64,000 bases of DNA from NCBI RefSeq assembly GCF_030028105.1, contig NC_092383.1:97549604-97613603 (forward strand), given 5' to 3'. The notes below the pieces were generated by a model. It was given only the letters and a program-made list of their open reading frames with translations, ran no database searches and was not told the DNA's origin. Below are positions 2,713 to 51,110 of the stretch, one piece after another. This DNA comes from Mobula birostris (taxonomy: Eukaryota). The translations under genes and the position numbers were made by a program. Position 1 is the stretch's first letter, and each line of letters starts with the position of its first letter.

Positions 2713-2851
2713 CAGTTAGTCCTGACGAAGGGTCTCGTCCCGAAACGTCGACTGTACCTCTCCCTAGAGATGCTGCCTGGCCTGCTGCGTTCTCCAGCAA
2801 CTTTGATGTGTGTTGCTTGAATTTCCAGCATCTGCAGAATTCCTCGTGTTT
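2713..2851 (+). ncRNA. Penelope terminal-repeat fragment with a minimal type I hammerhead ribozyme motif (2718-2753)
   Basis: AGTC-CTGACGA-AGGG(tctcgt)CCC-GAAAC-GTC-GACT: core CUGANGA/GAAA/GUC, helix I AGTC/GACT and a palindromic helix III (ACGT). Confidence 0.7.
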
Positions 2852-3045
2852 ACCTTCTCTCTGAACTTCTTCATCTTCCTCACTTTCAGAGCTCTCTCCA
2901 CTGTCATTTCTTATTCTTTTATTCCCTTTGTCTCGGTTTTCATCCATCCGTCCCCTCACTATCTCATTTACTTTTATTTCTCCCCAGCTGCCTACCCCGA
3001 TCCCAAATCCCTATCCCGCTCCTTCCCCACTATCTCCCTCCCCCC

Positions 3046-27174: not shown

Positions 27175-27495
27175 CTGGGACTGGGGCTTCCCCTACCACT
27201 GTGAATGGAACTTGGGGACAGTCGGTCTTCTTACCTCCTGGACTCCCAGTCGGACCGGACGTTGCTGAGGTTGTGTGGAGACTGTTAACACCCAGAAAGA
27301 AGATAGTGACATATTCAAACAAGATCAGTGACTATTACGGTCCTGAGGAGTACAAGCGACGGATAACTTTTCATCCCGGGAACTTCAGTCTGGAAATCCG
27401 TGATCTACAGATAGAGGACATTGGTGATTATGAGGTGACTGTTACAGCAAGTTCAGGAGCACAGACTCAGAACAAAATGCGACTGAAGGCGTGCG
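27175..27495 (+). CDS. Ig V-set domain exon A (CD2/SLAM/CEACAM-N-like, no intradomain Cys pair); probable N-terminal domain
   Basis: Acceptor ctcctcttgtctcctcAG at 27174, donor G|GTGAGT at 27496; 321 nt, phase 1/1. Translation (A)GTGASPTTVNGTWGQSVFLP...VVWR...RITFHPGNFSLEIRDLQIEDIGDYEVTVT...MRLKAC has the C-strand W, a DxGxY motif and sequons NGT and NFS. Confidence 0.88.
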
Positions 27496-28479
27496 GTGAG
27501 TGAGATGCCGTGGAGGGGCCTGGGTTTCATCAGTTCCTGAAATGTCCCTAGTTAATGGGCGAGGGGTGATCCTGTGTGCTCCCCTGTTTTCTGAATCCTA
27601 CTGTCTGTCTGCATCCAGAGCTGGGCTCATGGTCCCAGTGTAGTGTGGCTGAGTCAGTGTGAGGCTGGAGGACACACTCACCACATCTGCGGAGACTGGA
27701 CCAGAGACTGAAGCATCGAACTGTCAATGGGGAGCCTTGTGACTCCGATGCTGGAGGGGATGAGCAGATTGAGAAGGGGGAACAGGAGAAAGGCCGATCT
27801 GGTGGGAGGGACGGATGATTGGATCCCACTGTATCCTGTCAAAGGCCTGGTCTGTCATGTTCAGGGATCCCATTTTCCCAGGATACTGCTTGTTAATTCC
27901 CTAGCCTGAGGTCTGAGCTCAGCAAGGTGTTTATTCCTCAGCCTTCGTGCTGTGCTGAGTGAGAGCCTGTGTATTCATTACACTGAATGTAGTGTCCCAG
28001 TGAGTGACACAGTACACGGACACAACAGCACACTCACACACACCAGTATGGTTCCTGACTCACCCTAACAGTAATATAACATTCACAATTATCTCACTCA
28101 GCAACGTCTGTCTGAGAAATCTCCTCCACCCCAGGTTTAACGGGTTCCATTGGAGGGAGGAGAATGTCAGAACATGGGGAATAGAACATCACAGGAACAG
28201 CTCCTCAGCCTCATGATGTGCTGCCAAACTCATTGCTAATGGAATCCAGTTAAGCTAATCCCTTCTGACTGTTCGTGCTCCATATGCCTTTATTCTCTAC
28301 ACATTCATGTGTGTATGTACAGCCTCTCAAAAATCTCTTTGGCCTTTGCCTCTATCACAACTCCCGGCAGCCCATTTCAGGCTCCCACCACTCTCTGTGT
28401 AAAGAAAAACTTGCCCTGCACATCTCCTTTGAATTCACCCCTGTCACTGTAAATGCACAATCTCTGGCATTAGCCACTT

Positions 28480-28777
28480 TTTAAATGATTTTTAAAAATT
28501 TTATCGAGATACTGCGGGCAATAGGCCCTTCCGGGACTTTGAGACTCGCAGCCCAGCGATTCCCCCAATTGTAACCCAGCCTAATCACAGGGCAATTTAT
28601 AATGACCAATTAACCATCCAATCGGTACATTATTGGACTGTGGGAGGAAACCAGAGAACGCAGAGGAATCCCACGTGGACATGGGGAGAATGTACAAACT
28701 CCTTACGGGCAGTGGGAATTCAACCTGGTTCACTGGTATTGTAAAGCGTTGTGCTAACCACTAAGCTATCATGCCAC
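28480..28777 (-). mobile_element. tRNA-derived V-SINE (HE1-like)
   Basis: Minus strand has an A box tagcttagtgg, a B-box-like ggttgaattcc and a V-domain-like core ggtttcctcccacagtcc. Confidence 0.75.
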
Positions 28778-29110
28778 CCCTGGGAAAAAATCCTGTCTGT
28801 CTATCATCTGTGTCCTTAAAAATGTTATAAACTTGTATCAGGTCAATCCTCAACCTCCGGCACTCAGAGGAAACAACCCAAATATGTCCAAACTTTTCTT
28901 CCAGCACATGCCCTGTAATCCGGGCACCGAGATGGTAAATGTCTGTTCCCTCTCCAAAGCCTTCACATTCTTCCTTTAATGGGGTGGCTGGAAATGAATG
29001 CAATACTCCAGATGTGGCCTAATTAGAATTTTCAAAGATGTAGCATAACTTCTTGCCTTTTGAACTCAGTGCCTCGACTGATGAGGACAAGCATGTAAAA
29101 TCCCTTCTTT

Positions 29111-32100
29111 TTTTTAATATAATTTTTATTAAATTTTCAAAATGAATACATGGAAAGATAATATCTACCCTACCTCCTCCCCTTAACCCTTCCCCCCTCC
29201 CCCCCGTATGTAGTCCTACCTAAAAAGAAAAGAAAGAGAAAAAAAGAACCGCCTGGGTATTGGGAGGTTTCCACATGCTCCATGGGATTTAAAATAAATT
29301 TAGTATACTTATTCGTTAGTTTCCCCAAGGGACCAAGATCTTTATCGGAGCAATTAAATATGCCATCCTACCTTTTGTAAATAAGGGCGCCAGATATTCA
29401 AAAATGTTTCATATTTATCTCTTAAATTATAAGTAATTTTTTCGAGTGGAATAGAACTAGCCATTTAATTGTTCCAACGATTCATACTTAAATACGAATC
29501 AAATTTCCAAGTCACAGCTATAGTCTTCTTAGCTACTGCCAATGCAATTTTTATAAATTTTTTCTGATACTTATTCAATTTAAGTTTTGGCTTTATCCCT
29601 TCAATATCACCTAGTAGAAATAATACAGGGTTATGTGGAAGTTGAGTTCCAGTAATTTGTTCCAATAAGACTCTTAAATTTATCCAAAAGGGTTGAATTT
29701 TAAAACAAGACCAAGTAGAATGTAAAAAAGTACCAATTCCTTGATTACACTGAAAGCATTTATCGGATAGATTTGAATTTAATCTATTTATTTTTTGTGG
29801 TGTAATATTATTGGTGTAAAAAGTTATATTGTACTAATCTAAGTCGAACATTTATTGTATTTGTCATACTGTCAAGGCACAGTCTTGACCAATTTGTTTC
29901 ATCAATATTGATATTCAGATCTGTTTCCCATTTTTGTTTTGACTTATGGATTCCTTGTTTAATTGTCTGTTTTTGAATCAAATTATACATACAAGAAATA
30001 AATTTTTTAATTTTCCCTTTTTGAATTAAAATTTCAATTTCATTAGGCTTTGGCAAAAACATTGTTTGACCCAGCTTGCCTTTTAAATAAGCCCTTAATT
30101 GAAGGTAACAAAAGAAAGTGTTATTTGATATTTTATATTTATCCTTTAGTTGTTCAAATGACATCAATATACCTCGTTCATAACAGTCTCCTATAAATCT
30201 AATCCCTTTTTGGTACCAATTATATAAAAGTTGATTGTCCATTGTAAAAGGAATAAGCCTGTTTTGAAACAAAGGTCTCCTTGCTAATAAAGATTTCTGT
30301 ATTTCATTATCAACATTTACCTTATTCCATAGATCAATCAAATGTATTAATATAGGAGATTCTTTCTTTTCCCATATCCATTTAGATTCCCATTTATATA
30401 TAAAATCTTCAGGTCTATTTTCTCCTATCTTGTCTAATTCTATTTTAATCCATGCTGGTTTTTGATCATCGAAGAAAGATGCAATGAATCTAAGTTGATT
30501 TGCTTTATAATAATTCTTAAAGTTTGGAAGTTGTAACCCTCCTAACTCAAATTTACATGTCAATTTTTCCAATGATATTCTTGACATCTTACCTTTCCAA
30601 AGAAATTTTCTCACACATTTATTTAACTCTTGGAAAAAAAATTCTGTGGCAATTGTATTGGTAATGTTTGAAACAAATATTGTAATCTGGGAAATATATT
30701 CATTTTTACAACATCGACTCTGCCTGCTAATGTTATTGGTAGTATCATCCATTTGTGAAGATCTTCTTGAATTTTTTTCAATAGTGGTACATAATTAAAT
30801 TTATATAAATTCTTTACATCATTATCAAGTCTTATACCTAAATACTTTATACCATTTACTGGCCATCTAAATTGTGTTGCTGATCAACATTGGCTATAGT
30901 CTCCTTTAGTAAGAGGTAAAATTTCACTTTTATCCCAATTTATTTTATAACCTGATACCTTCCCATATTCCTCCAATCTAAAAGATAATTTATGTAGCGA
31001 ATGTTGTGGGTTTGTTAAGTAAATCAAAACACCATCAGCAAAAAGATTAATTTTATATTCTTCCTGATTAACTCTAAAACCCATAATATCTGGATCAATT
31101 CTGATTAGTTCTGCTAATGGCTCTATCACCAGTATAAATAAAGCAGGTGATAATGGACAACCTTGTCTAGTTGACCTTTTTAACTGGAATGGTGTTGAAA
31201 TTTGAGAGTTTGTCACTACTTTAGCATTAGGGTTAGTATTTAAAGTTTTAATCCAATTTATAAAAGATGTTCCTAACCCATATTTTTCTAATACTTTAAA
31301 TAAAAAAATCCCATTCCAATCTATCAAATGCTTTTTCTGCATCCAAGGCTACTACTATATTCTTCTCCTCCCTTTTTTGTGCCAAATGAATTATACTGAG
31401 TAACCGAGTTACATTATCTGCCAATTGTCTATTTTTAATAAATCCTGTTTGATCCATATGTATTAATTTTGGTAAATATTTAGATAATCTATTCGATAGA
31501 ATTTTTGCTATTATTTTATAATCCGTATTCAATAAAGAAATAGGCCTGTATGATGTTGGTTTCATTGGATCTCTGTCTTTTTTTGGCAGTACTATTACAA
31601 TCGCTGTTGAAAAAGATTCTGGGAGTTTATGTATTTTTTCTGCTTGACGTATTAGCTCGATAAAGGGAGGAAATAATAAATCTTTAAACTTTTTATAAAA
31701 TTCAGGTGGAAAACCATCTTCTCCTGGAGATTTATTACTTTGGGGTGATCCTAAAGCTTCTTCAACCTCTTTTAATGTAAAAGGCGTATCTAATCCCTTC
31801 TGTTCTTCCGAATTCAATTTTGGAAGAGTTACTTGTGATAAAAACCTTTCTATCTCATTAACATCATTTTGTGATTCTGATTGATATAATTCAGAATAGA
31901 AACTTTTAAAGGTTTCATTTATTTCAAAAGGTTTATAAGTTATTTTATTTGCACTTGTTCTAATTGCATTTATTGTTTTGGAAGCTTGTTCCGTTTTCAA
32001 CTGCCAAGCAAGAATTTTATGTGCTCTCTCACCTAACTCATAATACCTTTGCTTAGTTCTTATGATTGCTTTTTCCATTCTATATGTCTGAAGCGTATTA

Positions 32101-34057
32101 TATTGTAACTTCTTATTGACAAGTTGCCTTCGTTTTTCTTCCAACATATATCTTTGAGATTCTTTTTCTAATTTTGTAATCTCTTTTTCTAATTGATCTA
32201 GTTCTGCCATATATTCTTTCTTGATTTTAGATGTGTAACTTATTATCTGGCCCCTCAAATATGCTTTCATCGCATCCCATAATATAAATTTATCATCCAC
32301 TGAATGAAAATTTGTATCCAAAAAAAATTGGATCTGCTTTTTCATAAAATCACAAAAATCTTGACATTTTAATAATGTTGAATTAAATCTCCATCTATAA
32401 GCCACTTCTTCCTTACCAGTCATTATTATTGTCATTAATAAAGGAGAATGATCTGACAATATTCTTGCTTTATATTCCATATTTTTCACTCTGTGTTGAA
32501 TATGCATTGATAATAGGAAAAAATCTATCCTTGAATATGTTTTATGTCTATGAGAATAGAACGAATAGTCTCTTTCTTTAGGATTGATTCTTCTCCATAT
32601 ATCAATCAAATTTAAATCTTTCATCAATGATAGAGTTGGATTTACTACTTTCGATTTTGTAACAGCCTTAGTTGATCTATCTCAGACTGGGTCTAAGCAA
32701 AAATTAAAATCTCCTCCTATTAATATTTTTTCATGTGCATCAGCCAAATTCAAAAAAGCTTCTTGTATGAATTTTGCATCATTTTCATTTGGTGCATAAA
32801 TATTCATAAAAGTCCATGATTCAGAGAAAAGTTGACAATATATAATCACATATCTCCCTGCAGAATCGGTTATTACATTTTGTATTCTAATTGGTAACAT
32901 TTTATTGATCAAAATTGCTACTCTCCTCGCTTTTGAATTAAATGAAGCTGCAACAACACTACCCACCCAATCTCTCTTTAATTTTTGATGTTCTGTTTCT
33001 GTTAAATGCATTTCCTGTAAAAAGGCTAAATCTATCTTCATTTTCTTAATATGTGTTAAGATTCTTTTTCTTTTCACTGGTCCATTAAGCCCATTAAGAT
33101 TAAAGCTCAAAAAATTCAATAAATTAGTCATTATTTTTAACAAAGTTACTCCAATCTAAAACATTACTTAGCTTCTCAACTCTCATAGTTCCTTGGGGAA
33201 TCTCTTAGAACTTCACCAAGTTGCTATGTGTTTCCCTCCCAATAATCCAGGCAAAAAGAAAAAAAAAAGATAGATGAGATATAAAAAAAGAAAAAAACAG
33301 AATACCCCCCCCACTAATGTTGTGAATGAAAGGATACACAACACTACCCCACTCCATTTTGCGGGTTGTGGCTAAAGCCACGCTTGCACACATGATTAAC
33401 GTAGCAATTGGTCAGTGCTTCTTCCAGCTCCCCCGTAACAAAAAAATTATATATAGATTAAAAAAAATTAATGTTACTATTCCCAACTAGTATACCTCAA
33501 ATTTTAACCTTACTTCCCCTCCCTCATATAATTCGTAATATATTTATATATTCATCCGCCTTCAAAAATCCAACAAGTCCATTCTTTGACCCAGTCTTCT
33601 TCTTCAATCCATCTCGCTCCCCTGGTTTTGTTCTTGTATCTGGTGAATATTCAGAGAATCTTGCACAAACTGCTCCGCTTTCTGGTAATCATCCGGTAAA
33701 AATCTTTTTTCTCCACCAGCCAAAAAAATCTTCAAGGTTGCAGGATAACGCAATATAAATTGATAACCATGATCCCATAGGATTTTTTTCACTGGATTAA
33801 ATTTCTTCCTTCTCTTCAAAAGTTCATAACTTATGTCAGGGTAGAAAAAAATTTTATTCCCTTGAACCATCAATGGCCCTTTTCTATTCTTGGCAGCTTG
33901 GGCAGCTGCCTGTGGAATCCTTTGCAAATGAAAGAGGAGGACCAATCAATTGAAATTGAGCGGGCACATAGAGCTCTAAGACCAAAACCACAAGATGACC
34001 AATATCCACTAGCAATTTTAATAAAATTCTGAAGATTTCAAGACAAGGAAAGGATTC
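29111..34057 (-). mobile_element. L1/Tx1-clade LINE, 5'-truncated, with inverted 5' end and a 15-bp TSD
   Basis: TSD taaaatcccttcttt at 29096-29110 and 34058-34072. ORF1 C-terminus FYPDISYELLKRRKKF (33604-33945); endonuclease FNLNGLNGPVKRKRI...QEMHL...GGDFN; RT segments YRPISLLNTD, DAEKAFDRLEW and RQGCPLSP. Frameshifted. Confidence 0.95.
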
Positions 34058-34559
34058 TAAAATCCCTTCTTTACCCCCCAATCAACATGCAGCCACGTAT
34101 CCCCACCCACGTCTGCATCTGATCCATGTCCAATTGCATCTATTGGCACTCCCCTGCACCATCCACAACACCGACAGTCTGTTGGAGGCCTTTGGCCGAC
34201 CTAGAGCCTATTCCCCACTCACTAAAATCGGGGTTGGTCTGACCCTGATCTCAGCTCTACTTTCCTGCCTGTTTCCACCCTCTCCCCAAATCCTCTCCAG
34301 ATCAAAACTCTGACTGAACCTTGAATACAGTGACTCAGCCTCCACAACTCTCTGGGGAAGAAAATTCCATCGATTCCTGAACCTTAGAGAGGAGAAATCC
34401 TTCCTCATATCTGTCTGAAATTATGGTCCCTTATTCTGAAACTGTGCCCTTGTTTTAGATCATACAGGAGGGGGAAACATCCTCCCAACACCCACCTCAC
34501 CCCGATTCCTGCTCCAGTCACTGAACTCACCAGCTGACTGCCTCCTCTTGTCTCCTCAG

Positions 34560-34862
34560 AATGGATGGAGACCGTGAAAGGACTTTGGGGACAGTGGGTC
34601 TCCTTACCTGCTGGGATCACAGGCGGGCTGGACGTTTCTCAGGTGGTGTGGAGAAGAGACGGAACCACAATAGCAGAATATGCAAATGGAGTCATTTCTT
34701 ACTTCGGTCCTGAGGAGTACAAGCGACGGATAACTCTTCATCCCGGGAACTTCAGTCTGAAAATCCGTGATCTTAAGAGAGAGGATACTGGTGATTATGA
34801 GGTGACTGTTACACCAAGTAGAGGAGGACAGATTCAGGCGGAAATGCGACTGGAGGTAAAGG
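34560..34862 (+). CDS. Ig V-set domain exon B
   Basis: Acceptor tctcctcAG at 34559, donor G|GTGAGT at 34863; 303 nt, phase 1/1. Translation (E)WMETVKGLWGQWVSLP...VVWRRDG...RITLHPGNFSLKIRDLKREDTGDYEVTVT...MRLEVK. Confidence 0.9.
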
Positions 34863-35891
34863 GTGAGTGAAGCGTTGCAGAGGGCCCAGGTTTCTTTGAT
34901 TCCTCTAACACTTCCAATTAATGGGTGAAGGCAGATCCTATGTGTTCCCCTGTTTTCTAAACCCCACTGACTGTCCGTGTCCAGAGCTGGGCTCACGGTT
35001 CCAGTGTAGTGGGATTGAGTCAGTGTGAGTCTGGAGGACACACTCACCACATCCCCAGAGGCTGGACTAGAAACTATGAAGCATTGAACTTTCAATGGGG
35101 ATCCTTGTGGCTCCAAGGCTGGAGGGGATGAACAGATGGTGTGGGGGATTGGGAGATGGGCGGATGGTGTGAGGGGGGCTGGTGGTTGGGCCAAACAGTC
35201 TATATCTGTGGGTCAGTTCAACAGATCCCTCTGTATCCCCAGGTCAAAGTCCTGGTCTTTCATGTTCAGGGATCCCATTTTCCGAGGGCACTGCTTGTGA
35301 CTTCTCCAGACTGAGGTCTGAGCTCAGCAAGGTGTTTATTCCTCAGCCTTCATGCTGTGCTGTGCTGAGTGAGACCCTGTGTATTCATTACACTGAATAT
35401 AATGTCCCAGTGAATGACACAGTACACGGACACAACAGCACACACACACAGCAATATGGTTCCTGACTCACTCAAACAGTAATATCACATTCACAGTAAT
35501 CTCACTCAGCAACGTTTGTCTGAGAAATCTCCTCCACCCCAGGTTTAACGGGTCCCATTGGAGGGGGGAGAATGTCAGAACGTGGGGAATGGAACATCAC
35601 AGGAACAGCTCCTCAGCTCATGATGTGCTGCCAAACTCATTGCTAATGGAACCCAGTTAAGCTAATCCCTTCTGACTGTTCGTGTTCCATATGCCTTTAT
35701 TCTCTAGACATTCATGTGTGTATGTGACAGCCTCTCAAAAGTCTCTCTGGCCTTTGCCTCTACCACCACTCCAGACAGCCCATTTCAGGCTCCCACCCCC
35801 ACTCTCTGTGTGAAGAAAAACTTGCCCTGCACATCTCCTTTGAATTTACCCCTGTCACTGTAAGTGCACCATCTCCGGTATTAGACACTTT

Positions 35892-36186
35892 TTATTTGAT
35901 TTTTTAAAATTTTTTTGAGATACACCAGGGAATAGTCCCTTCCGGGATTTGAACCACACTGCCCAGCAATCCCCTGATTGTAACCCAGCCTAATCACAGG
36001 ACAATTTATAATGACTGATTAACCATCCAATCGGTACGTGTTTGGACTGTGGGGGAAAACCAGAGCACGCAGAGGAATCCCACGTGGACACGGGGAGAAT
36101 GTACAAACTCCTTATGGGCAGCGGGAATTCAACCTGGTTCACTGGTACTGTAAAGCGTTGTGCTAACCACTACGCTATAGTACAAC
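35892..36186 (-). mobile_element. V-SINE at the position paralogous to 28480-28777
   Basis: Same flanks; A box tagcgtagtgg on the minus strand. Confidence 0.75.
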
Positions 36187-36246
36187 CCTTGGGCGGAAAA
36201 ATCCTGGCTTTACAGTACCAGTTGGAAGTGATTAGCTTCTACTTTA

Positions 36247-36576
36247 AACGCAAACAACAGGAATTCTGCAGACGCTGGAAATTCAAGCAACACACATCAA
36301 AGTTGCTGGTGAACGCAGCAGGCCAGGCAGCATCTCTAGGAAGAGGTGCAGTCGACGTTTCAGGCCGAGATCCTTCGTCAGGACTAACTGAAGGAAGAGT
36401 GAGTAAGGGATTTGAAAGTTGATTTTGGATCTCCCCCTCCCCCTCCAACTTTCAAATCCCTTACTCACTCTTCCTTCAGTTAGTCCTGACGAAGGATCTC
36501 GGCCTGAAACGTCGACTGCACCTCTTCCTAGAGATGCTGCCTGGCCTGCTGCGTTCACCAGCAACTTTTATGTGTG
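36247..36576. mobile_element. Fold-back Penelope-derived insertion with two opposed hammerhead motifs and a 14-bp TSD
   Basis: TSD tagcttctacttta at 36233-36246 and 36577-36590; inverted arms 36291-36421 and 36446-36576 (131 bp, 1 mismatch). Confidence 0.9.
36482..36517 (+). ncRNA. Minimal type I hammerhead ribozyme motif (mirror copy at 36350-36385 on the minus strand)
   Basis: AGTC-CTGACGA-AGG(atctcgg)CCT-GAAAC-GTC-GACT with intact core; predicted cleavage after C36513. Activity untested. Confidence 0.75.
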
Positions 36577-37401
36577 TAGCTTCTACTTTATCTGTGTTCT
36601 TAAAAATGTTATAAACTTGTATCAGGTCTATCCTCAACCTCAGACACTCAGAGGAAACAACCCAAATCTGTCCAATTGTTTTTCTTCCAGCACCTGCCCT
36701 ATAATCTAAGCAGTATCATGGTAAATATCTGTACCCTCTCCAAAGCCTCCCCATCCTACCTTTAATTGGGTGGCTGGAAGTGAATGCAATACCTTAGATG
36801 TGGCCAAACCAGAATTTAAAAGATGTAGCATAAGTTCCTGACTGTTGAACTCAGTGCCTCGACTGATGAGGACAAGCATGTAAAGTCCCTTCTTTACCCC
36901 CCTGATCAACATGCAGCCACGCTTCCCCACCCATGTCTGCATCTGATCCATGTCCAGTTGCACATATTGGCGCTCCCCTGCACCATCCACAACACCACCA
37001 ATCTTTATCTCATCTACAAATGTGCTAACCCTCCCATCTACATTTCTGTCCTTCGGCTCCTGAATCCTAAAATCCATTCACTGAGATCAGGGCTGGTTTG
37101 ACCTTGAACTCGGCTCCACTTTCCAGCTTGTTCCCATGCCTTAAGCGACTCCTCCAGATCAGATCTCTCTCAGCCTTGAATACAGTGACTCCACTGCTCT
37201 CTGGGGGAAAAAAATGGGGAGATTCCTGACCCTTGGAGAGGAGACATCATTCCTCATCTCTGTCTGAAATGGTGCTTTATTCTGAAACTGTGCCTTGTTC
37301 TACACCCCACACAAAGATGAACACCTCCCCAGAACCCACCTCACTCTTGATTCCTCCAGTCACTGAGCTTACCTGCTGACTGCCTCCTCTTGTCTCCACA
37401 G

Positions 37402-37489
37402 ACTGGGTGGAGACTGCGAAAGGAGTTTAGGGACATATGGTCTCTTTGCCTGGTGGGATCTCAGCCAGACTGGATGTTCCTAAGGTGGT
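37402..37489 (+). pseudogene. Truncated Ig V exon C with an in-frame stop
   Basis: Intact acceptor tgtctccacAG at 37401; reads (D)WVETAKGV*GHMVSLPGGISARLDVPKVV (TAG at 37428-37430); the 3' two-thirds and the donor are missing. Confidence 0.85.
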
Positions 37490-38510
37490 TCTGGTCCCAA
37501 TAGCTTCGTCTGCACCCCTTATGAAAACGTGCTTGGTGCTCTTATTGTTGTGGAGACCAGAACTGTGCATGGTGCTCCCAGTGAGGTCCAATCCAGGGAT
37601 ATGGAGACCAGAATTTGGGGGTGTGAGAGGTGATTAAAAAGGGGACTGACGGTAATGGGTGTGTGTGAGAGGTGATTGGAAAGGGGACTGATGGTAATGG
37701 GTGTGTGTGAGAGGTTTGGGAAGGGAACTGACGGTAATGGGCGTGTGTGAGAGGCAGCAGGCATCACCTTCCTGTCTCCACCCAGCTAACAGGAATCACC
37801 TGACACTGGTTCCCAATTCTTCACTTGCAGCCTATTTTAAACCAAGCTCTCATCCACAGCCCTTGTTCATTCATCATGCCCACCAGCCTCAACCAGTTGC
37901 TCCTGGCCTTCAGTTACCTTGTTGCCTTGTCGTCTAAGACATTTTAGAACATCAAACGGTACAGCGCAGGGACAGGCCCTTTGTCCCATAATGTTATGCC
38001 TAACTAACTAAATTAGTAATCAAATGCCCAACTAAACTAATCCCTTCTGCTTACACATTGCCCATACGCTTCCAGTTCCAGCATGTTTGTGTGCCTATCT
38101 AAACGCCTCCACCACCACCATCACGGGCAGCACGTTCCAGGCACCCACCACCCACCCTCTGTGTAAAAATACTTGCTTCACATCTCCTTCCAACTTAACC
38201 CCTGTCATCTTAAATGCATGTACTCTGCTATTAAACATTCCAACCCTGTCTGTCTACTCTATCTATGCCTCGCATAATCTGATAAACCTCTATCAGATCT
38301 TCCCTTAGCTTCTGCCACTCCAGAGGAAATAACCTAAGTTTGTCCAACATTTTTGACCCTGGAGAAAAATACAGGCTAACTACTTTATCTGTGTCCTTCA
38401 AAATTTATAAACTTATGTCAGGTCTATCTTTAACCTCTGACACTCAGAGGAAACATTCCAAGTTTGTCCAGAAATTCCTTATAGCACGTGCTTTTTAATC
38501 TAGGCACTCA

Positions 38511-38752
38511 CCGCCAAGGTATGATCCCAGCACGTTAGGAGACTGTCTGTCCCGAAGCTCCTTTCACAGTCCCCATCCAGTCTGAGGAGACAAGAGGAGG
38601 CAGTCAGCAGGTGAGCTTAGAGACTGGAGCAGGAATCAGAGTGAGGTGGGTTCTGAATGAGGGCACAGTTTCAAAATAAGGGACCACCATTTCAGACAGA
38701 GATGATCCCCTCGCCAAAGGTCTGGAATCAATGCAATTTTCTCCCAAAAAGA
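38511..38752 (-). repeat. 242-bp inverted duplicate of 39241-39482
   Basis: The reverse complement matches 39241-39482 with 5 mismatches and includes the exon D acceptor and the first 71 nt of the exon. Confidence 0.92.
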
Positions 38753-39411
38753 AATGTCTGCTCCCTATCCAAAGCCTTCACATTCTTCATATAATGAAAT
38801 GACTGGAACAGAAAGCAATACTTCAGATCTCCAAACTAGGGATTTTAAGGATACAGTATAACTTCCTAATTTATGAACTCATTGCCTCAACTAAGCCAGT
38901 ACCTTATTTTACCACCCTATCAATATGCAGCCACATTTCCCTGCTATTGTCTGCATCTGAGCCATATCCAATTGCACCTATTGGCACTTCTCTCTACAAT
39001 GCACAACACCACCAATCTTTATCTCATCTATAAACATGCTAACCTTCCCGTCTACATTTCTATCCAAAGAACAGTTAGAGGCCTTAAAGGCTCACAACCC
39101 TGCTTCCTGCTCACTGAGATCAGGGTTGGGCTGATCTTGATCTTAGCTCTGCTTTCCTGCCTGTTCCCACGCCTTCCCCAACTCCTTTCCACATCAAAAC
39201 TCTGTCTCAGTCCTGAACACAGGGACTCAGCCTCCACAGCTCTTTTTGGGAGAAAATTGCATTGATTCCAGACCTTTGGCAAGGGGATCATCTCTCTCTG
39301 AAATGGTAGTCCCTTATTTTGAAACTGTGCCCTCATTCAGAACCCACCTCACTCTGATTCCTGCTCCAGTCTCTAAGCTCACCTGCTGACTGCCTCCTCT
39401 TGTCTCCTCAG

Positions 39412-39714
39412 ACTGGATGGGGACTGTGAAAGGAGCTTCGGGACAGACAGTCTCCTTACGTGCTGGGATCACACCTTGGCGGGATGTTTATCAGGTGGTG
39501 TGGAGATCAAACGGAACCAGAATAGCAGAATACACAAATGGCACCATTTCCTACTTCGGTACTGAGGAGTACAAGCAACGGATAACTCTTCATCCCGGGG
39601 ACTTCAGTCTGGAAATCCGTGATCTACAGAGAGAGGATGCCGGTGATTATGAGGTGGAAATTGCTGTGGGTTCTGGAGCTGAACTTAAGGCGAGAGTGCG
39701 ACTGGAAGTGAACG
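39412..39714 (+). CDS. Ig V-set domain exon D
   Basis: Acceptor tgtctcctcAG at 39411, donor G|GTGAGT at 39715; 303 nt, phase 1/1. Translation (D)WMGTVKGASGQTVSLR...VVWRSNGT...RITLHPGDFSLEIRDLQREDAGDYEVEI...VRLEVN. Confidence 0.9.
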
Positions 39715-42200: not shown

Positions 42201-43500
42201 TCAGAGTTCATGATTTGTTTAGAAATTTGAAGGTGGGGGGAAAGCTGTTCCTAAGACATTGAGTATGTGTCTTCAGGCTCCGGTACCACCTCTTTGTTGG
42301 TAGTAATGAGATGAGGGCATGTGCTGGGTGGCTGGGATCCTGAATGAAGGACGCTGCCTTTTTGAGGCAGGTTCTTTTGATGTCGTTATTGCTTGGGAGG
42401 CTCGTGCACATGATGGAACTGGCCGAGTTTCCAATGCGCAGCAGATTCTTCGGCATGTTTTTACACTTCATCTCAGACAATGATACAACTGATCATGCCC
42501 TCCACAGTTCATCTGTAGAAACCTGCTTGAGTTTTTGGTGACATACCAAATTTTGTCAAACTCCCAATGAAATTGAGCCACTTACATGCCCTCTTTGAAA
42601 TTTACAGTTGGGCCCAGGATAGATCTTCAAAGATGTTGATGCTCAGGAAATTGAAACTCCTCACTCCTTTATATTGTTGATCCCTCAATGACGACTGGGG
42701 TGTCTTCCCTTGAATTTCCCTTCTTGAAATCCACAATCAATTCTGTGGTCTTACTGACGTTGACTGCAAAGTTGTTGTTACAACACCATTCAACCAGCTG
42801 ATCTATCTCACTCCACTCCTGTACACCACCTCATCACTGTCTGAGATTTGTATCATTGGTGAAATTTTAGATTGCAGTTGAGTTGTTACCAACCATACAA
42901 TCATGGGTTAGGTTTACAGTTAGGGTTAGAGAAAGTAGAACAATGGGCTAAGCACACAATTTTGAGGTGCACCAGTGTTGCTTGTGAACAAAGAGGAGAT
43001 GATCATTTTTTTCCGCACTCACTGTGATCTCCTGATGAAGAACTCCAGGATCTGGTTGCAGAGGTCCAGGGTTTGGAGTTTGTTGGTTAGTTCTGAGGGG
43101 ATGATGGGGCTGTAATCAATAGACAACCTGACATGGGTATCGCTGATGTCCAGGTGGTCCGATCCTGACTGGAGAGCCAGTGACATAGCATCTGCTATAC
43201 ATCTGTGGGCAAATTGCAGCAGGACCAGGTCTTTGCTGAGGCAGGAGTCAATTCTAGTCGTCATTAACCGTTCCAAGCTATTCACCAGAGTAGATGTGAG
43301 TGAAAGTGAGTGATGGTCGTTGAGGCGGCTCATTCTTTTATTTTTGGGCACCAGTATGAATGAGGCCTTTTTGAAGCGGTTGGGAACCTCTGGTTACAGC
43401 AGTGAGAGATTGAAGATGTCCTTGACACTCCCACCTGTTGGTTGACACAGATTTTGGGTGCCCTACCAGGTACAGCAAAGATGTTCTGACATCAGCTTCA
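42200..43500. mobile_element. Old Rex1/L2-type LINE fragments
   Basis: LTSTLVNSLERLM...DLVLLQFAHR...LCNQILEFF (43019-43351, minus strand). Confidence 0.6.
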
Positions 43501-43842
43501 GAGACAGATATCAATGGATTGCCGGGGGCTGGAAAATTTGGCAAGACCGTGTGAGCCAATTATGGAACGCCACTGGTTTTGTTAGCGGGTCAGAGTCAGC
43601 ACAAACCATATTCCGTACCTCAGCTGAGGTCCAGGGCTTTAGAATTGGGGTTTCTCTCACCATTGTTCGGGGAAATGGACCGATATCTTCCTAGTAGAGC
43701 TACCTGTTGCCTCAGCTCTTATTCCCTTTGATTTTGTTGTCTGTTGCCTTCGAAAAGGTGTTAATTCGGGGAACCATTCTGTTCCGGACCCTCGATGTGC
43801 AAACAATAGGCAACGCAGAATAGGTGGGTGGTTGCGGCTACT

Positions 43843-44334
43843 TCAATGACCTGAGAGGTCCTGAGGTGGATCACACGGAGGAGGGGGAGAAGCAGAAGCA
43901 GCCGGTAACTGTGGGTGCAGACTGTTGGCGGGTCCTGGAGCCGCGGCCATCGGTGTCCTGGGTTTTTTGTTAGAAGTAGTTTCTTTCTTACGTTTTGTCT
44001 TAGGTTGTTGGTGCTGTTTGGCCACTTGTTCCCATTTATTAAGACACCACATCACATAATCGAGGTACCATGTAGGATCTGCGCTAGCTGAATCAGTCGT
44101 CTCCTTCCAATATTTTATCTTTTTCTGGTAAAAAGAACCTCCATAAGGCCAATCCCCTTTATTCCAACCGTACAAATCACTAGAAAATGTAACCGAGTCC
44201 CTGCTGTCCACTGTTTCCAAAAAAACCTTATCTGCGGGTGATCCCAGGGGGAACCAGCAGTCACCCAGCAATTTCTTTGTCTTCTTGTACTTTTCGATTT
44301 TCTTCATTGTGGTGTCATTTACTGGTATTTTCAT
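43843..44334 (-). mobile_element. Probable endogenous retrovirus gag (matrix-like + proline-rich) remnant
   Basis: 163-aa ORF: basic N-terminus, DWPYGGSF resembling the WPxxGTF motif of gamma/epsilon-retroviral matrix, then SASPPPPCDP. Confidence 0.45.
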
Positions 44335-44997
44335 TTTAGGACCACTCAGGCATCACTTCTGAGGCACTGTTCTCGACGGTTTACCTTTAGAAAGGGCAGC
44401 TAACCTACCAGGACGGTTACCCATCTTTTCAAGTCTTAAACCTTACTTAACGGGTGTTAATATATTCCCACGCCCCAGCTATTGGCTTGTATAATCAACT
44501 GATTATGACGATGAACATCTGGGTCCAAAAAAGATCAGTTTTATTCTAATGCAATTTAAAATTTCAGTGTTCCCTGTCCCTTCTCCCAGTTTCTGTCCTG
44601 TTCTTACTCGAACTCAGGAACACTGGTCACCACCGGTAAGGGACAACGTTGTCTAACACAGTCCTGGTCCCCAGTCTTGAATCCCTTATTTCAGGGCAAT
44701 CTCATGTGCAGCCTTGTCTGACACCATCCCAGGTCCCTGGTCTTGAAGCCCGTCTTCCAGGGCAAACTCGTGGGCAGCCTATTTCCCTTCCAAGGGGCCA
44801 ATTTCTCCATCATAGGTTCACCATATCCCTTTTAAAGGGATCCCATCTCGTCACCGATATTGTCTGGGCATATCAAGTAACATTCGGACTGAAATATTGA
44901 TATTATCGGGGAATTCAAAAGAACAGTTGGACCCAGATATTCAACTGTTCCTTATTTCCGTGGCCATGTGAGAATCGTCTCTCAAACAGTAAGACTA

Positions 44998-46503
44998 CAG
45001 GTGTCCTCCGCTTTTCGAATGTTCACTTTACGAAACCTCACTGTGACGAAAAACCTACATTAATACCCTGTTTTCGCTTTCAGAAGGTGTTTTCACTGTT
45101 ATGAGGAAAGGCAGCGCGTGAAAAAATCAGTGCGCGATAAAAGGCAGCGCGCGCGCCGAGCAGCCGCTCTCCCTCGGATTCGGAACGGCATTGCTTTAAC
45201 ACGTTGCATTGAGCAGCCGTTAGCAAGATGATTTCAAAGGTGTCGGAAAAGCCTGAAAGAGTAAGGGTGTTACACAGCGTAAAACTAGACATAATTAAGC
45301 ATTTCGATCGTGGTGGATGAAGCAAGGACAAAGCTTGTGGAAGTTGACGAAGATGATGTTGAAGAGGTTTTGGCATCCCATGACCAAGAACTGATAGATG
45401 AAGAGCTGATGCAATTGGAAGAGGAAAGGATAACAATCGAAACCGAATGCAACCGAAGGCAGAAAGTGAAGCAACTGCGTGAGATTTTCGCTGCAATGAT
45501 AAAGTACGACTTTAATTTTGAAAGGGTACGCAGGTTTAGGGGATATTTGCAGGATGGTTTGAGTGCTTACAAACAACTGTATGATAGAAAAATGCGCGAG
45601 GCTGAGCAGTCAAGCAAGCCTTCCACATCAGCCACAGCAGACGACGAACATTGAGGTGGGCAGCCATAGGAGAAGGTGAGCTGCCTGCCTTGATTGACAA
45701 TGAGATGAGATGAGATGTTCCACCACCCCAACACCTGGGTCCCGGACAGATACTGTACCGATTTGCGAAGAACGCAGCGGTAGCCAGGAGGCATACAGCA
45801 CATCTTTAAGAAAAAAGCCGAAATAAACATGCTAATTAATTAGGTGCCGCCTAGCACGTAATTGTCGCCTCTGATCTGCGCCGACACTTACGTGCCGGGC
45901 AGCACCTAATTAATTAGCATGTTTATTTCGGCTTTTTTCTTAAAGATGTGCTGTGTGCCTCCAGCCTACTGCTGCATTCTTCGCGGCAATGTATTGGGGT
46001 GGGGGCCACTGTAACACCCAGCCTGCGACAACTCAGTCTAACACACCATCATCAGTGTGCTCAGCGCTGTTTTCCCAATTCCGGTAAGTGATACTACACT
46101 GTACATACATTATTTCTACTTTATATAGGCTGCGTATTTTTACGTGTTATTTGGTAGATTTGGCAGCTTCATAGTTTAAAGGTTACTGGAGAGCGCATTT
46201 ATGCCAACAGCGCTTGCGTGAGATTTTCGCTATGGAGATCTGTGCAGGCAATCGTTGTAGAGAAGTATTTCTACTTTATATAGGCTGTGTATTTATCATA
46301 TCATTCCTGCTTTTACTATATGTTACTGATATTTTAGGTTTTATGTGTTATTTGGCATGATTTGGTAGGTTATTTTTGGGTCTGCGAACACTCACAAAAT
46401 TTTCCCATATGAATAAATGGTAATTGCTTCTTCATTTCACGACATTTCGGCTTATGAACCGTTTCATAGGAACGCTCTACCTTCGGATGGCGGGGGAAAC
46501 GTG
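44998..46503 (+). mobile_element. Tigger/pogo-type (Tc1/mariner superfamily) internally deleted DNA transposon
   Basis: TA at 44996-44997 and 46504-46505; imperfect TIRs caggtgtcctccgc and gcgggggaaacgtg; transposase remnants SVKLDIIKHFDRG and EVDEDDVEEVLASHDQELIDEELMQLEE. Confidence 0.82.
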
Positions 46504-47079
46504 TATATAATTCATAATTCTTCCTTTTCAGACAGCTACAGACTTCAAGTCAAGGTTTCCTGATAATGTAAGTAGATGTAATCCAAGCATTTGTGAGACT
46601 GAATGGAAGTACCTTTTCACAACAAGCCCTGCAGCTGGAGGAGGGTGGTTAGCAATTAGCTCAGCATCTTGCTGTTATGCTTTAATAATACTTGTGGTTT
46701 TCCACACTCCCTTTTATCTTTTCAACATTTTCTGTTCCCTTCTACCAGAACATTCAGTGGTCATACATTTTCATTAACCCTCAAAATTTCCTCTCACCCA
46801 TTTTCCAGTGTTGCCTTCAGCTGTTCTTTTTGACTTCTCCTCCCATACTCCCAGCTCAACAAGACAGCTCCTCTCTGTGTCCGATCTCAGGAGTGTGTGG
46901 GACAGTGCAGAATGAACAAGGATCTGTGTTTTACTCGTAACTTCTTCTCGTTAAGAGGGTGCTGCTGAACCTCTGTGATCTCTGGCTGGCAGTTAATGAA
47001 ACAAGGACATCAACTAAATATTTGTTAACCAAACTTCTGGCAAACAATCATCACAATAGTCTGTAATTTTCCTTCGGGG

Positions 47080-47815
47080 TTGGAGGCAATTCGATGTGGC
47101 AGAACCGAGGCAAGGCGATGTGGCAGAACCGAGGCAATTCGATGTGGCGGAACCGAGGCAATTCGATGTGGCAGAACCGAGGCAATTCGATGTGGCAGAA
47201 CCGAGGCAATTCGATGTGGCAGAACCGAGGCAAGGCGATGTGGCAGAACCGAGGCAAGGCGATGTGGCAGAACCGAGGCAAGGCGATGTGGCAGAACCGA
47301 GGCAATTCGATGTGGCAGAACCGAGGCGAGGCGAGGTGGCAGAACCGAGGCGAGGCGAGGTGGCAGAACCGAGGCGAGGCGAGGTGGCAGAACCGAGGCG
47401 AGGCGATGTGGCAGAACCGAGGCGAGGTGGCGGAACCGAGGCGAGGCGAGGTGGCGGAACCGAGGCGAGGCGAGGTGGCGGAGCCGAGGCGAGGCGATGT
47501 GGCGGAGCCGAGGCGAGGCGAGGTGGCGGAGCCGAGGCGAGGCGAGGTGGCGGAGCCGAGGCGAGGCGAGGTGGCAGAGCCGAGGCGAGGTGGGGGAGGT
47601 GAGGCAATTCGATGTGGCGGAACCGAGGCAAGGCGAGGTGGCAGAACCGAGGCGAGGTGGCAGAACCGAGGCGAGGTGGGGGAGGTGAGGCAATTCAATG
47701 TGGCGGAGGCGAGGCAATTCGATGTGGCGGAGGCGAGGCAATTCGATGTGGCGGAACCGAGGCGAGGCGAGGTGGCAGAGCCGAGGCGAGGTGGGGGAGG
47801 TGAGGCAAGGCGAGG
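47080..47815. repeat. 24-nt-unit CpG-rich minisatellite
   Basis: Unit gaggcaattcgatgtggcagaacc and variants; gives 8-aa periodic ORFs. Confidence 0.95.
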
Positions 47816-48905
47816 CGGCGGACCCGTTGCCGACAGCGTGGGAAATCAAGAAAGATCAGGCACAGGCGGAATCGAAACTGCGTGGTCCAAGCACCAGACG
47901 TGACTGAGCACAATCTACGGATGGAGATTTACAGACCGAATCAATGCCATGGGGTCAGGCACCAGACACAACTAAGCATGATCTTTGGATGGAGAATTGA
48001 AGTGGTGAAGTCCAGCGTATCCAAGAGACGAGCCTGTTGTTCGGATGGAGATTTAACCACTGGGCCAGATAGAAAAGGTCAGGTTGTTGAGGCCGGAGGC
48101 AAGGCTTGGGCTGCCTCAGATCGCTGCTCAAAGCGGCAGAACCCGATGTTGGGATGGAGAGTTACGCTCCGAGCCAGATTGGAAACGTCAGGGTGTCAGA
48201 AAGGTCTGGGTGACGGGGACCGAGGTGAGGTTCGGGCTGATTAAGATCGCTGCTCCACAATGTTTACATGGCTCTACACTAAAGTATGGGACTCTCTTGC
48301 AGACCTCAGTTCAAAAACACGACTGGCTTGCAGTTACTGTTTACATGATGGATTGTTTCTATTGCACATTGAGTATTCTACGGTCTTTTTTCATATTGGT
48401 GTGTTTGTTTTTGTGTTTCTTTGTCTCGTGGCTGCCTGTCAGGAGATGAATCTGGAGGTTCTATAATGTATGCACATTTTGATAAACTGTACTTTGTACT
48501 TTGAACTTTAATTGGGGATAGAGTCAGGGATACAGGGTGATGGGGAGAGGGGTTTCTGTGGGAAGGTGTGAGGGAGTTGGATTAACATCAATTGAGATAA
48601 CAGTCAGCGATACAGGGCACTGTGGGAGTGTGGTTACCAAGTGACAGTGTGAAGGAACTTGTTTAACATCAGTGGAGATACAGCTGGTGACATTGTTGGC
48701 TGTGATTTAAGGGGAGTGATGTGAGGATGATTGGAACTGGAAGTGTGGGAATGGGATTAATTCTGTAATCCTTTCTCTCCATCCCCCTCCCCCTTTATGA
48801 TGGGGAGTTTTATCTGGCCTGTGGTGAGAGGGAGTGGATCCATCAATTCCTTGTCACTGGGAGTATGAGGATAGGATTAATTACAGAATCTTTTCTCCTC
48901 CCCAG

Positions 48906-49058
48906 ATCCTGCTGACAGATCGTCACACGGTGCTTGGATCATTCCCCTCGTTGTGATACTCATTCTGTTACTTGTGTGTTGCTGTATATATAGAAAGAGG
49001 GAGTATCTTCACTCACACTGGGACAAATGTATGGGAAAGAAATCCGGAACATCTGACG
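48906..49058 (+). CDS. Transmembrane exon 1 with juxtamembrane cytoplasmic segment
   Basis: Acceptor ttttctcctccccAG at 48905, donor G|GTAGGT at 49059; 153 nt, phase 1/1. Translation (D)PADRSSHGAWIIPLVVILILLLVCCCIYRKREYLHSHWDKCMGKKSGTSD. Confidence 0.85.
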
Positions 49059-49105
49059 GTAGGTGTCTCCCCCCCCCCCCCCCCCCCCCACCCACACACG
49101 ACCAG

Positions 49106-49284
49106 TGCCAGATTACAGATCGTCACACACTGGTTGTATAATTCCCATTGTGATACTCAGTTTGATCATTGCGTGTGCCGTACTGTATATAATCCGGGGT
49201 CATCTTTGCTCTGTAAACTCTGGCATCATTGTCACTCATGCAAGTCCACCCCGATGGGAAAGGCATCAAGAAGGATACATGTGA
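49106..49284 (+). CDS. Transmembrane exon 2 (paralog of TM exon 1), probably terminal
   Basis: accAG at 49105 after a C21 tract; phase-1 reading (V)PDYRSSHTGCIIPIVILSLIIACAVLYIIRGHL...EGYM*; shares acagatcgtcacac with TM1 at the same offset from the acceptor. Confidence 0.6.
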
Positions 49285-49289
49285 TGATG

Positions 49290-50830
49290 GGGCGGAGGAG
49301 AGGGAGGGGCTTTGGGAATGGGGGGAAAAGGAGGAGGAGAGGAGGGTCTGGGGAGTAGGGAGGAGGAGGGGAGGGTCTGGGGAGTAGGGAGGAGGAGGGG
49401 TGTCTGGGGAGTGGGGAGGGGCTTTGGGAATGGGAGGAGGAGGAGGAGAGGGTCTGGGGGAGTAGGGAGGAGGAGGGGAGGGTCTGGGAGAGTAGGGAGG
49501 AGGAGGGGAGTGTCTGGGGCAGTAGGGAGGAGGAGGGGAGGGTCTGGGTGAGTAGGGAGGAGGAGAGGCCATTCTGGGTGAGTAGGGAGGAGCAGGGGAG
49601 AATCTGGGGGGGAGGAGGAGGGGTGGGTCTGGGGAGAGGGGAGGAGGAGGGGAGGGTCTGGGGAATAGGGAGGAGGAGGGGAGGGTCTAGGAGCAGGGAT
49701 GAGGAGGGGAGTTTCTGGGGGAGCAGGGAGGAGGAGGGGAGGGTCTGGGAGAGTAGTGAGGAGGAGGGGAGGGTCTGGGGGAGTAGGGAAGAGGAGGGGA
49801 GGGTCTGGGGAAGAGGAGGGGATGGTCTGGGGAGTAGGGAGGAGGAGGGGAAGGTCTGGGGAGTAGGGAGGAGGAGGGGAAGGTCTGGGGAGTAGGGAGG
49901 AGCAGGGGAGAGTCTGGGGAGGAGGAGGGGGGGTCTGGGGAGAAGGGAAGTGGAGGGGAGGGTCTGGGGAGTAGGGAGGAGGAGGGGAGTTTCTGGGGGA
50001 GTAGGGAGGAGGAGGGGAGGGTCTGGGAGAGTAGTGAGGAGGAGGAAAGGGTCTGGGGGAATAGAGAGGAGGAAGAGGGTCTGGGAGAGTATGGAGAAGG
50101 AGGGGAGGGTCTGGGGGAGTAGGGGAGGGTCTGAGGAGGAGGAGGGGAGGGTCTAGGGAGTAGGGAGGAGGAGGGAAGGATCTGAGGAGTAGGGAGGAGA
50201 AGGAGAGTGGGGGAGTAGGGAGGAGGAAGGGAGTGTCTAGGAGTAGGGAGGAGGAAGGGAGTGTCTGAGGGAGGAGGAGGGGAGTGTCTGGGGAGTAGAG
50301 GAGGAGGGAAGGGTCTGGGGGAGTAGGGAGGTGGAGGGGACGGTCTGTGTGAATAGGAAGGAGGAGGGGAGGGTCTGGGAGAGCAGGGAGGAGGAGGGGA
50401 GGGTCTGGGGGAGTAGGGAGGAGGAGGGGAGGTTCTGTGAGAGGAAGGTGGAGGAGGGGAGGTTCTGGGAGTAGGGAGGATGAGGGGAGTGTGGGGGAGG
50501 AGGAGGGTAGTGTCTGGGGAGTAGGGAGGAGGAGGGGATGGTCTGGGGGAGTAGGGAGGAGGAGGGGAGTGTGGGGGAGGAGGAGGGGAGTGTCTGGGGA
50601 GTAGGAAGGAGGAGGGGAGTGTCTGGGGAGTAGGAAGGAGGAGGGGAGGGTCTGGGGGAGCAGGGAGGAGGAGGGGAGGGTCTGGGGAGCAGGGAGGAGG
50701 AGGGGAGGGTCTGGGGAGTAGGGAGGAGGAGGGGAGGGTCTGGGGAGCAGGGAGGAGGAGGGGAGGGTCTGGGGAGTAGGGAGGAAGAGGGGAGGGTCTG
50801 GGGGAGCAGGGAGGAGGAGTGGAGGGGCTG
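49290..50830. repeat. Purine/G-rich ~29-30-nt minisatellite
   Basis: Unit ggaggaggaggggagggtctggggagtag and variants, over ~1.5 kb. Confidence 0.95.
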
Positions 50831-50907
50831 AGGCAGTGGATTGGAGGAATGTATATCAATCAGGAAAGGCACTGATGGGGCCTCCTCACCTCTGCTCTCT
50901 GTCTCAG

Positions 50908-51110
50908 AGATCCGATAGTGACACGGCCTTTGAACAGTCGATCTGGTGGAGAACACAGCTCATAGACACCCACTCCATCGGAACAGTGTGTGCTAGATAC
51001 TGCCTCACCTTCCCAGGGCTTCCATCGTTTCCAACTGTTGCTTCAGATTTTCACTCTCTGCTCGAAATATGTAAATATACAATAACATTAAAGAACCATT
51101 CTAAAACCAG
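50908..51110 (+). other. Candidate terminal exon (phase-1 entry gives E-I-R-stop) with 3' UTR
   Basis: Strong acceptor cctcctcacctctgctctctgtctcAG at 50907; ATTAAA at 51087-51092 followed by GT-rich sequence. Confidence 0.45.

Follow-up and report, generated by a model that had tools for sequence, protein, structure and literature searches.

Layout of the locus

We analyzed a stretch of 64,000 nucleotides from the ray Mobula birostris (RefSeq assembly GCF_030028105.1, contig NC_092383.1, positions 97,549,604 to 97,613,603 of the forward strand), hereafter called the window; positions are counted from its first letter, and it contains zero N letters. On its plus strand lie three intact exons for immunoglobulin (Ig) V-set domains that lack the canonical cysteines, followed by an exon for a transmembrane (TM) helix. 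Six exons, all with GT-AG borders, give an uninterrupted open reading frame (ORF) of 393 aa when they are spliced in silico. Taken as a whole, the explanation that we favor is very probable: The locus would be one gene of ~46–50 kb for a cell-surface protein with three V domains strung together and no C2 domain, an undescribed but computer-predicted variant of the SLAM/CD2 family of immune receptors.

The three V exons, called A, B and C below (V1, V2 and V3), occupy 27175–27495 (321 nt), 34560–34862 (303 nt) and 39412–39714 (303 nt). All are on the plus strand, are of phase 1/1, have lengths divisible by 3 and share the same acceptor (...cctcag, in the context ...ctcctcttgtctcctcag) and donor (G/gtgagtg). 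The leader exon, coding for the signal peptide, is found at 4885–4930 (plus strand); it encodes MVSSLLSVAVWVACV plus 1 nt, ends at a phase 1 donor (G/gtaagg) and is the sole leader-like match within the window, 22 kb upstream of V-A, from which an intron rich in transposable elements separates it. It was located through the related leader of a paralogous ray protein (P0004). Its junction with V-A yields MVSSLLSVAVWVACVAGTGASPTT, and two RefSeq models, P0164 from M. hypostoma and P0168 from M. birostris, begin with the identical sequence. Another leader candidate, ATGAAGGGCCTGCTC... at 27079 just 5' of V-A, was rejected because it has no usable donor or intron and because the leader at 4885 matches the orthologues.

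The TM and tail exons were located by mapping a stingray protein, P0001, back to the window. The TM and juxtamembrane exon (48906–49058, plus strand, 153 nt, phase 1/1) encodes DPADRSSHGAWIIPLVVILILLLVCCCIYRKREYLHSHWDKCMGKKSGTSD, and the cytoplasmic tail exon (50910–50965, plus strand) encodes DPIVTRPLNSRSGGEHSS and a stop. The latter exon begins at a tandem acceptor (cagAG/, 50903–50911): Use of the downstream AG, with the exon starting at 50910, gives the 18-aa tail form DPIVTRPLNSRSGGEHSS that matches the stingray models (P0001, P0161 and P0165 have this long tail), and use of the upstream AG, with the exon starting at 50908, gives EIR and a stop, the ending that P0164 of M. hypostoma has. 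An alternative terminal exon at 55291–55442 (plus strand) has a phase 1 acceptor and encodes GARVRDITESVAFLTGKVRSQKSGSTSVPVTEAGRVMNSCKVHSGSEVLR and a stop; its product shares 98% identity with the tail of P0168, which is M. birostris isoform X4. Finally, a paralogous TM-like exon copy lies at 49112–49284 (plus strand; DYRSSHTGCIIPIVILSLIIACAVLYII... and a stop), 53 nt past the donor of the TM exon. It bears a weak likeness to the first TM exon and to the TM type of P0167 (E = 0.02), and it is a candidate alternative anchor only.

The encoded V domains

All three V exons match the Pfam V-set family with E-values of 7e-9 to 9e-8, with additional weak matches to Receptor_2B4 and SLAM. The canonical B- and F-strand cysteines are both absent in each domain; the F-strand motif reads DxGDYEV, not DxGxYxC, and the conserved C-strand Trp is kept. 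In an alignment of 94 V domains of the family, the invariant columns are W, L, I, D and Y, and no Cys is conserved. The whole ectodomain holds one Cys only, C122 (codon TGC, 27492–27494), at the end of V-A (RLKAC), and an intradomain disulfide is therefore not possible. The motif reads RLKVC in the Mobula orthologues; in every other relative the position of the Cys is taken by Tyr or Asp. Being unpaired, C122 could form a covalent dimer.

The domains differ at their N-termini, which read (A)GTGASPTTVNG in A, (E)WMETVKG in B and (D)WMGTVKG in the exon at 39412. Five N-glycosylation sequons are found in the 393-aa product. The TM helix, AWIIPLVVILILLLVCCCIY, is uncharged, and the exon that encodes it also encodes CCC at the inner edge of the membrane, a setting typical of palmitoylation. 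The tail of 42 residues has no immunoreceptor tyrosine-based switch motif (ITSM, TxYxx(V/I)) or inhibitory motif (ITIM): None was found in YRKREYLHSHWDKCMGKKSGTSDDPIVTRPLNSRSGGEHSS or in the alternative tail GARVRD...EVLR. An AlphaFold2 model of V-B has a pLDDT of 90 and a pTM of 0.81. In a full-length model of P0164 (pLDDT 78), three V domains are folded, the TM helix spans 332–366, and each G strand continues into the A strand of the next V domain, which suggests that the modeled three-V chain would be a rather stiff rod.

A sequence-only reading of this locus had described three intact, symmetric V exons without canonical cysteines, a GTGASPTT extension on A with a shared linker on the other V exons, one broken V exon, more than one TM exon, and neither ITIM, ITSM nor a charged TM residue. 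Each of these features is present as described, the TM exons being the one at 48906–49058 and the TM-like copy. The span that it gave to the gene, 27175–51110, holds for the V, TM and tail exons; the leader and the alternative terminal exon lie outside it.

Expression and direct V-to-V splicing

Read coverage was examined over 34300–35886, that is, exon B and its flanks, in four sequencing runs that contain exon B. In all four (4/4), read depth was restricted to the bins of exon B and was zero in the adjoining intron bins. From run X2, a contig of 133 nt without any mismatch carried 39 letters preceding 34559, and the 30-letter consensus of this overhang is exactly the window sequence 27465–27494, giving the junction from the end of A (27495) to the start of B (34560). 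From run X12, which bears another organism code, a contig continued past 34859 with CCG and then with exactly 39412–39438 of the window, giving the junction from B to C. The gene is thus expressed, with V-A spliced directly to V-B and V-B directly to V-C. The remaining loose contig ends derive from paralogues (e.g., ...RLEVYE) or from k-mer sharing among the V exons and were not used.

Tandem duplication of V units

Comparison of the window with itself (self-blastn) showed that the V exons sit in tandem units of ~2.8 kb whose flanking introns are conserved; between the A and B units, 1.7 kb of intron is 82% identical. A relic of a fourth unit lies between B and C: Self-blastn pairs 34058–34647 with 36881–37489, and both tblastn and translation agree in placing a broken V exon at 37401–37490 (plus strand; the third V exon in the numbering of the sequence-only reading, whose fourth is our C). 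This fragment begins DWVETAKGV*..., contains an in-frame stop and loses homology after ~29 codons. In addition, an inverted 242-bp copy (98%) of 39241–39482, the acceptor region and 5' end of V-C, lies on the minus strand at 38511–38752, as seen by self-blastn and minus-strand tblastn. The intron between V-A and V-B is longer than the B–C unit because of the insertion of a long interspersed nuclear element, which accounts for most of the extra length; it occupies 29808–33143 on the minus strand, with endonuclease and reverse-transcriptase ORFs in pieces of 443, 152 and 314 aa.

Variation among the V exons falls mostly in their N-terminal half; the block YFGPEEYKRRITLHPGNFSLEIRDL hardly varies. 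In the A/B pair (27119–28798 vs 34504–36209), the exon cores are 79% identical and 1 kb of intron is 88% identical; the ratio of nonsynonymous to synonymous substitutions (NG86 dN/dS) between paralogous V exons is 0.8–1.1. Together, this contrast and the dN/dS values hint at diversification of the V exons and are no more than suggestive of diversifying selection.

Elsewhere in the window, two long, strongly strand-skewed simple-repeat tracts were observed on the plus strand: a C-rich one at 2800–4750, just 5' of the leader exon, and a G-rich one at 47000–50900, in the last two introns (GGAGGAGGGG...-type, with units of ~24 nt). These tracts give rise to many spurious long ORFs on both strands. 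A search of the window against Rfam at the gathering threshold matched no family.

Absence of a detectable C2 exon

The sequence-only reading had found no C2 exon between the V and TM exons, and dedicated searches agree. Five C2-bearing proteins of the family, used as tblastn queries over the whole window with E up to 1, gave no match. A hidden Markov model (HMM) built from 76 C2 domains of the family and run with --max on the six-frame translation of the window gave one negative-score noise match only, and a Pfam search of the seven plus-strand ORFs between V-C and the TM exon found no Ig family. In nine RefSeq models from four species, moreover, the last V domain is joined straight to the TM segment. 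The conserved 1.7 kb 3' of V-A and V-B was considered as the site of a decayed C2 exon, as its three-frame reading is vaguely Ig-like; this candidate was rejected because tblastn and the family C2 HMM found nothing there.

Placement in the CD2/SLAM family

A profile of the 94 family V domains was searched against the sequences of the PDB. Its full-domain matches, in order of rank, are CD48 (6e-13), CD84 (2e-12), CD48, CD2, NTB-A, CD58 and 2B4. CEACAM1 matches only profile positions 55–102, at residues 151–198 of chains of 208 to 216 residues, well past the expected end of a first domain of ~100 residues, and the pIgR matches are likewise partial (profile positions 50–96). When the V-B model was searched with Foldseek, the best folds were CD48, 2B4, CD84, CD58, NTB-A and CD2, with TM-scores of 0.80–0.88 (0.84–0.88 for the set without CD58) and root-mean-square deviations of 1.6–2.3 Å. 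The V domains are therefore of the CD2/SLAM type in both sequence and fold.

The likeness extends to the build of the gene. As in CD48, CD84/SLAMF5, NTB-A/SLAMF6, 2B4, CD2 and CD58, the V-set domains have no B–F disulfide, each domain is encoded by one phase-1 exon, and the product is predicted to be a type I membrane protein. A membrane-proximal C2-set domain following each V, the V-C2 or V-C2-V-C2 order typical of CD2/SLAM, is missing; instead, three V domains stand head to tail, a build not known among characterised members. The multi-V member Ly9/SLAMF3 alternates V-C2-V-C2. The ray product also lacks the cytoplasmic ITSM by which signaling SLAM receptors recruit SAP or EAT-2, a trait that it shares with CD48, CD58, SLAMF8 and SLAMF9. 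Because no C2 exon was found and V is spliced directly to V, we file the gene as a variant derived from the CD2/SLAM family by descent and not as a canonical member.

Two other families invite comparison. The pIgR ectodomain consists only of V-type domains, with canonical and extra disulfides; the ray gene shares the all-V ectodomain and the PDB profile match, but it has no intradomain Cys pair, and family and function differ. CEACAM N domains lack a disulfide, as the ray domains do; the ray V domains are not most like those of CEACAM, and no IgC2-type A or B domain accompanies them. Among the rodent pregnancy-specific glycoproteins (PSGs) of the CEACAM family, those of the mouse have the order N1-N2-N3-A, and their tandem IgV-like N domains arose by exon duplication, N1, N2 and N3 each forming its own clade (PMC546212). 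The ray gene resembles these PSGs in its route of exon duplication. PSGs are secreted, placental and equipped with one IgC-like A domain, whereas the ray product is predicted to be TM-anchored, has no C domain and has V domains of the SLAM/CD2 type.

Ray relatives and origin of the three-V build

Relatives were collected with a phmmer scan of 1.8 billion representatives, using V-B as the query. It returned ray proteins that matched V-B over two or three stretches, the best being P0001 (XP_072887045.1) of Hemitrygon akajei, named "Ly-9-like," with the build leader-V-V-V-TM-tail. P0001 and P0159–P0167 have the V-V-V-TM build, except that P0163, a M. hypostoma paralogue, has four V domains; in all, this build occurs in RefSeq models of four ray species, mantas and stingrays. 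Such myliobatiform models (XP_072887045.1, LOC134355361–355365 and M. birostris isoform X4) share the leader-to-tail order of the window gene, and their domains are orthologous to its own at 71–98% identity, but they are automatic predictions with misleading names or none, and the literature searched does not describe them. P0164 and P0168 come closest to the window product. P0164 (M. hypostoma LOC134355365) is 92% identical over 376 aa; by domain, identity to the window product is 98% for V3, 93% for V1 and 87% for V2. P0168 is 98% identical over residues 1–224, after which V-B is followed straight by the TM exon and a different last exon, so that V-C is skipped.

Among sequence relatives more widely, the usual build is V-C2-TM with 1 or 2 SLAM-type ITSMs (TIYAQV, TVYATV, TLYDTV), and V-TM-ITSM, V-C2-V-TM, V-C2-V-C2-TM, V-V-C2 and all-V forms also occur. 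In M. hypostoma the relatives are numbered consecutively (LOC134355361–355365) along one contig, and in H. akajei they likewise share one contig. No all-V form was seen among the sawfish, skate or shark matches, within the scope of existing annotation.

A maximum-likelihood tree was built from 74 V domains. In it, manta V3 and stingray V3 fall into a single clade (support 99/92). The V1 domains lie in a myliobatiform clade (100/98) that includes V1 of the neighboring V-C2-V(-C2)-TM genes; every internal V domain belongs to another clade (99/96), in which the second V of V-C2-V-TM genes is found as well. The three-V gene is thus nested among V-C2(-ITSM) genes of its own lineage. The simplest reading of this tree suggests that the gene originated in a myliobatiform SLAM-like cluster, from a gene of the V-C2-V-TM type whose C2 exon would have been lost and whose internal V would have been duplicated before the split of Dasyatidae and Mobulidae. 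The three V positions would then have been kept since before mantas and stingrays parted. Phase-1 exon units of ~2.8 kb may still be gained and lost, given the broken fourth unit in the window and the four-V paralogue P0163.

Discussion

Based on these findings, we propose how the gene product would be built and used. The product would be a type I membrane glycoprotein: After a signal peptide would come three V-set domains in tandem, all Cys-free, then a single TM helix and a short tail without motifs. Since ITSM, ITIM and charged TM residues are all lacking, the protein would probably serve as an adhesion or ligand molecule without signaling of its own. By analogy with CD48, CD58 or SLAMF8/9, it is most likely a rod-like surface molecule that would engage SLAM-like partners on other cells. 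In-frame skipping of V exons, possible because their lengths are multiples of 3 and their phases are 1/1, together with alternative 3' ends, would vary the length, anchoring and tail of the protein. The routes to such variants would include omission of V-C, for which P0168 is the model, a choice between the acceptors at 50908 and 50910, the alternative last exon and possibly a form without the TM segment. As for the last, the TM exon has an internal AG at 48992–48993 (tatatag/AAAGAGG), and a phase-1 reading of 48992–49058 gives ERGSIFTHTGTNVWERNPEHLT, which is the C-terminal tail of P0170, a TM-less RefSeq isoform of a M. birostris paralogue; the locus in the window may therefore yield a soluble, frame-shifted isoform as well.

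Several points weigh against the explanation that we favor. The junctions from the leader to A, from C to the TM exon and from the TM exon to the tail rest on homologous RefSeq models, themselves predictions. That the sequencing runs are RNA is a guess, favored by a read depth limited to the exon and by the contigs that span junctions. Contigs from paralogues share k-mers with the gene, and some contigs are chimeric. A dN/dS of 0.8–1.1 would also fit relaxed constraint. Exon skipping is seen solely in a gene model (P0168) of a near-identical genome, and what we say of function is read from the sequence.

Other explanations would account for parts of the evidence. The V exons could belong to separate genes or to dead duplicated units, with the V-V-V frame a coincidence, and the ~2.8-kb tandem units, one of them broken and one partly inverted, as well as a dN/dS near 1 between exons, would suit this picture. 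It is already contradicted, since the A–B and B–C joints in the contigs fall precisely on the predicted splice sites and the introns have no depth, the 64 kb hold one leader and one TM and tail set, and orthologous models keep the same three-domain order, with V3 orthologous across two ray families; we give it practically no credence. The chance that the gene is a conventional V-C2 receptor of the SLAM/CD2 family, whose C2 exon is too diverged, in a gap or outside the window, is very slim. Every characterised CD2/SLAM member does have a C2 domain, close paralogues keep it (e.g., P0004, a V-C2-V-C2-TM protein whose TM exon closely resembles that of the window gene), and the C-to-TM junction in RNA lies outside the read coverage examined; yet the window has no N, the tblastn, family C2 HMM and Pfam searches were all empty, the A–B and B–C junctions are direct, and the nine RefSeq models have no C2.

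It is also highly improbable that we are dealing with a molecule of the CEACAM/PSG type that multiplied its Cys-free N domains and is no relative of CD2/SLAM. The disulfide-free N domains of CEACAM would agree with it, some relatives are automatically named "CEACAM5-like" or "PSG5-like," and V-exon duplication gave rise to N1-N2-N3-A in mouse PSGs (PMC546212). Against this, all full-domain PDB matches are CD48, CD84, CD2, NTB-A, CD58 and 2B4 with CEACAM1 matching only in part, the best folds are CD2/SLAM V domains, the relatives bear SLAM-type ITSMs, and the weak Pfam matches are to Receptor_2B4 and SLAM. A less distant alternative, unlikely in our judgment, keeps the same gene but makes its main product soluble: TM-less splicing or shedding would free the three-V chain, which would block SLAM-like interactions or pathogen adhesins as a decoy. 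The internal AG of the TM exon with the match of its phase-1 peptide to the tail of P0170, the several alternative 3' ends and the mouse PSGs, which are secreted multi-N proteins, would fit such a product, but most models, the closest orthologue included, retain the TM segment.

The sequence-only reading fared well: The V-V-V-TM receptor that it proposed is upheld by the 393-aa ORF, the A–B and B–C junction contigs and the RefSeq models in four ray species, and the affinity to CD2/SLAM that it considered is borne out by the PDB profile and Foldseek matches and by the ITSM-bearing relatives. Its idea that any V exon can be skipped in frame is allowed by lengths and phases, and skipping has been seen once, for V-C in the gene model P0168; the adhesion or decoy role that it named is a plausible proposal. 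It overstated the uniqueness of the gene, and novelty is limited, because orthologues had already been machine-annotated, Cys-free V arrays are predicted in other vertebrates (fishes and a frog), and mouse PSGs show N1-N2-N3-A (PMC546212). In the literature searched, no relevant paper on SLAM/CD2 genes of cartilaginous fish was found.

The arrays of other vertebrates match the same profile and are predicted, uncharacterised tandem V-set proteins with 3 to 17 V domains and 0 or 1 Cys in each. They include a loach protein with 17 V (Paramisgurnus XP_073669693.1), one of the fathead minnow with 11 V (Pimephales), a "Ly-9-like" protein of Centroberyx with 3 V, a bichir protein with 3 V and a frog protein with 5 V and a C2 (Mixophyes); in our collection they are the cypriniform P0011, P0017, P0034, P0039 and P0041, the frog P0020, the bichir P0085 and the Centroberyx P0072. 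Identity to the ray gene is, however, 26–35% (phmmer), and copy numbers differ. These predicted proteins may reflect a much wider tendency of CD2/SLAM-like V exons toward arrays. A bolder reading, which in all its parts together we hold to be unlikely, would go further: Cys-free V exons of the CD2/SLAM type would be self-multiplying phase-1 cassettes that repeatedly build C-free V rods in rays and perhaps also in teleosts, bichir and frog. Each V position of the ray protein would then bind a different partner, and exon skipping and copy number would make a tunable, multi-specific ligand for the ITSM-bearing receptors of the cluster, or a decoy for pathogens aimed at those receptors.

CD2/SLAM receptors have been taken to need the V-C2 unit, in which the C2 domain, as a stalk, determines how far apart the two membranes lie at immune contacts. 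The gene described here belongs to an expressed lineage, spanning the manta and stingray families, that would have dispensed with C2 and strung together three disulfide-free V domains; the V fold would thus be able to serve as stalk, as linker and perhaps as a multiple binding module. Such a lineage may offer a natural system for the effect of ectodomain length and V number on SLAM-type recognition, and it would add a case from cartilaginous fish to the exon-duplication route of the rodent PSGs. The practical value lies mainly in comparative immunology and genome annotation, where automatic names such as "Ly-9-like," "unc-89-like" and "uncharacterized" hide what appears to be a distinct subfamily.

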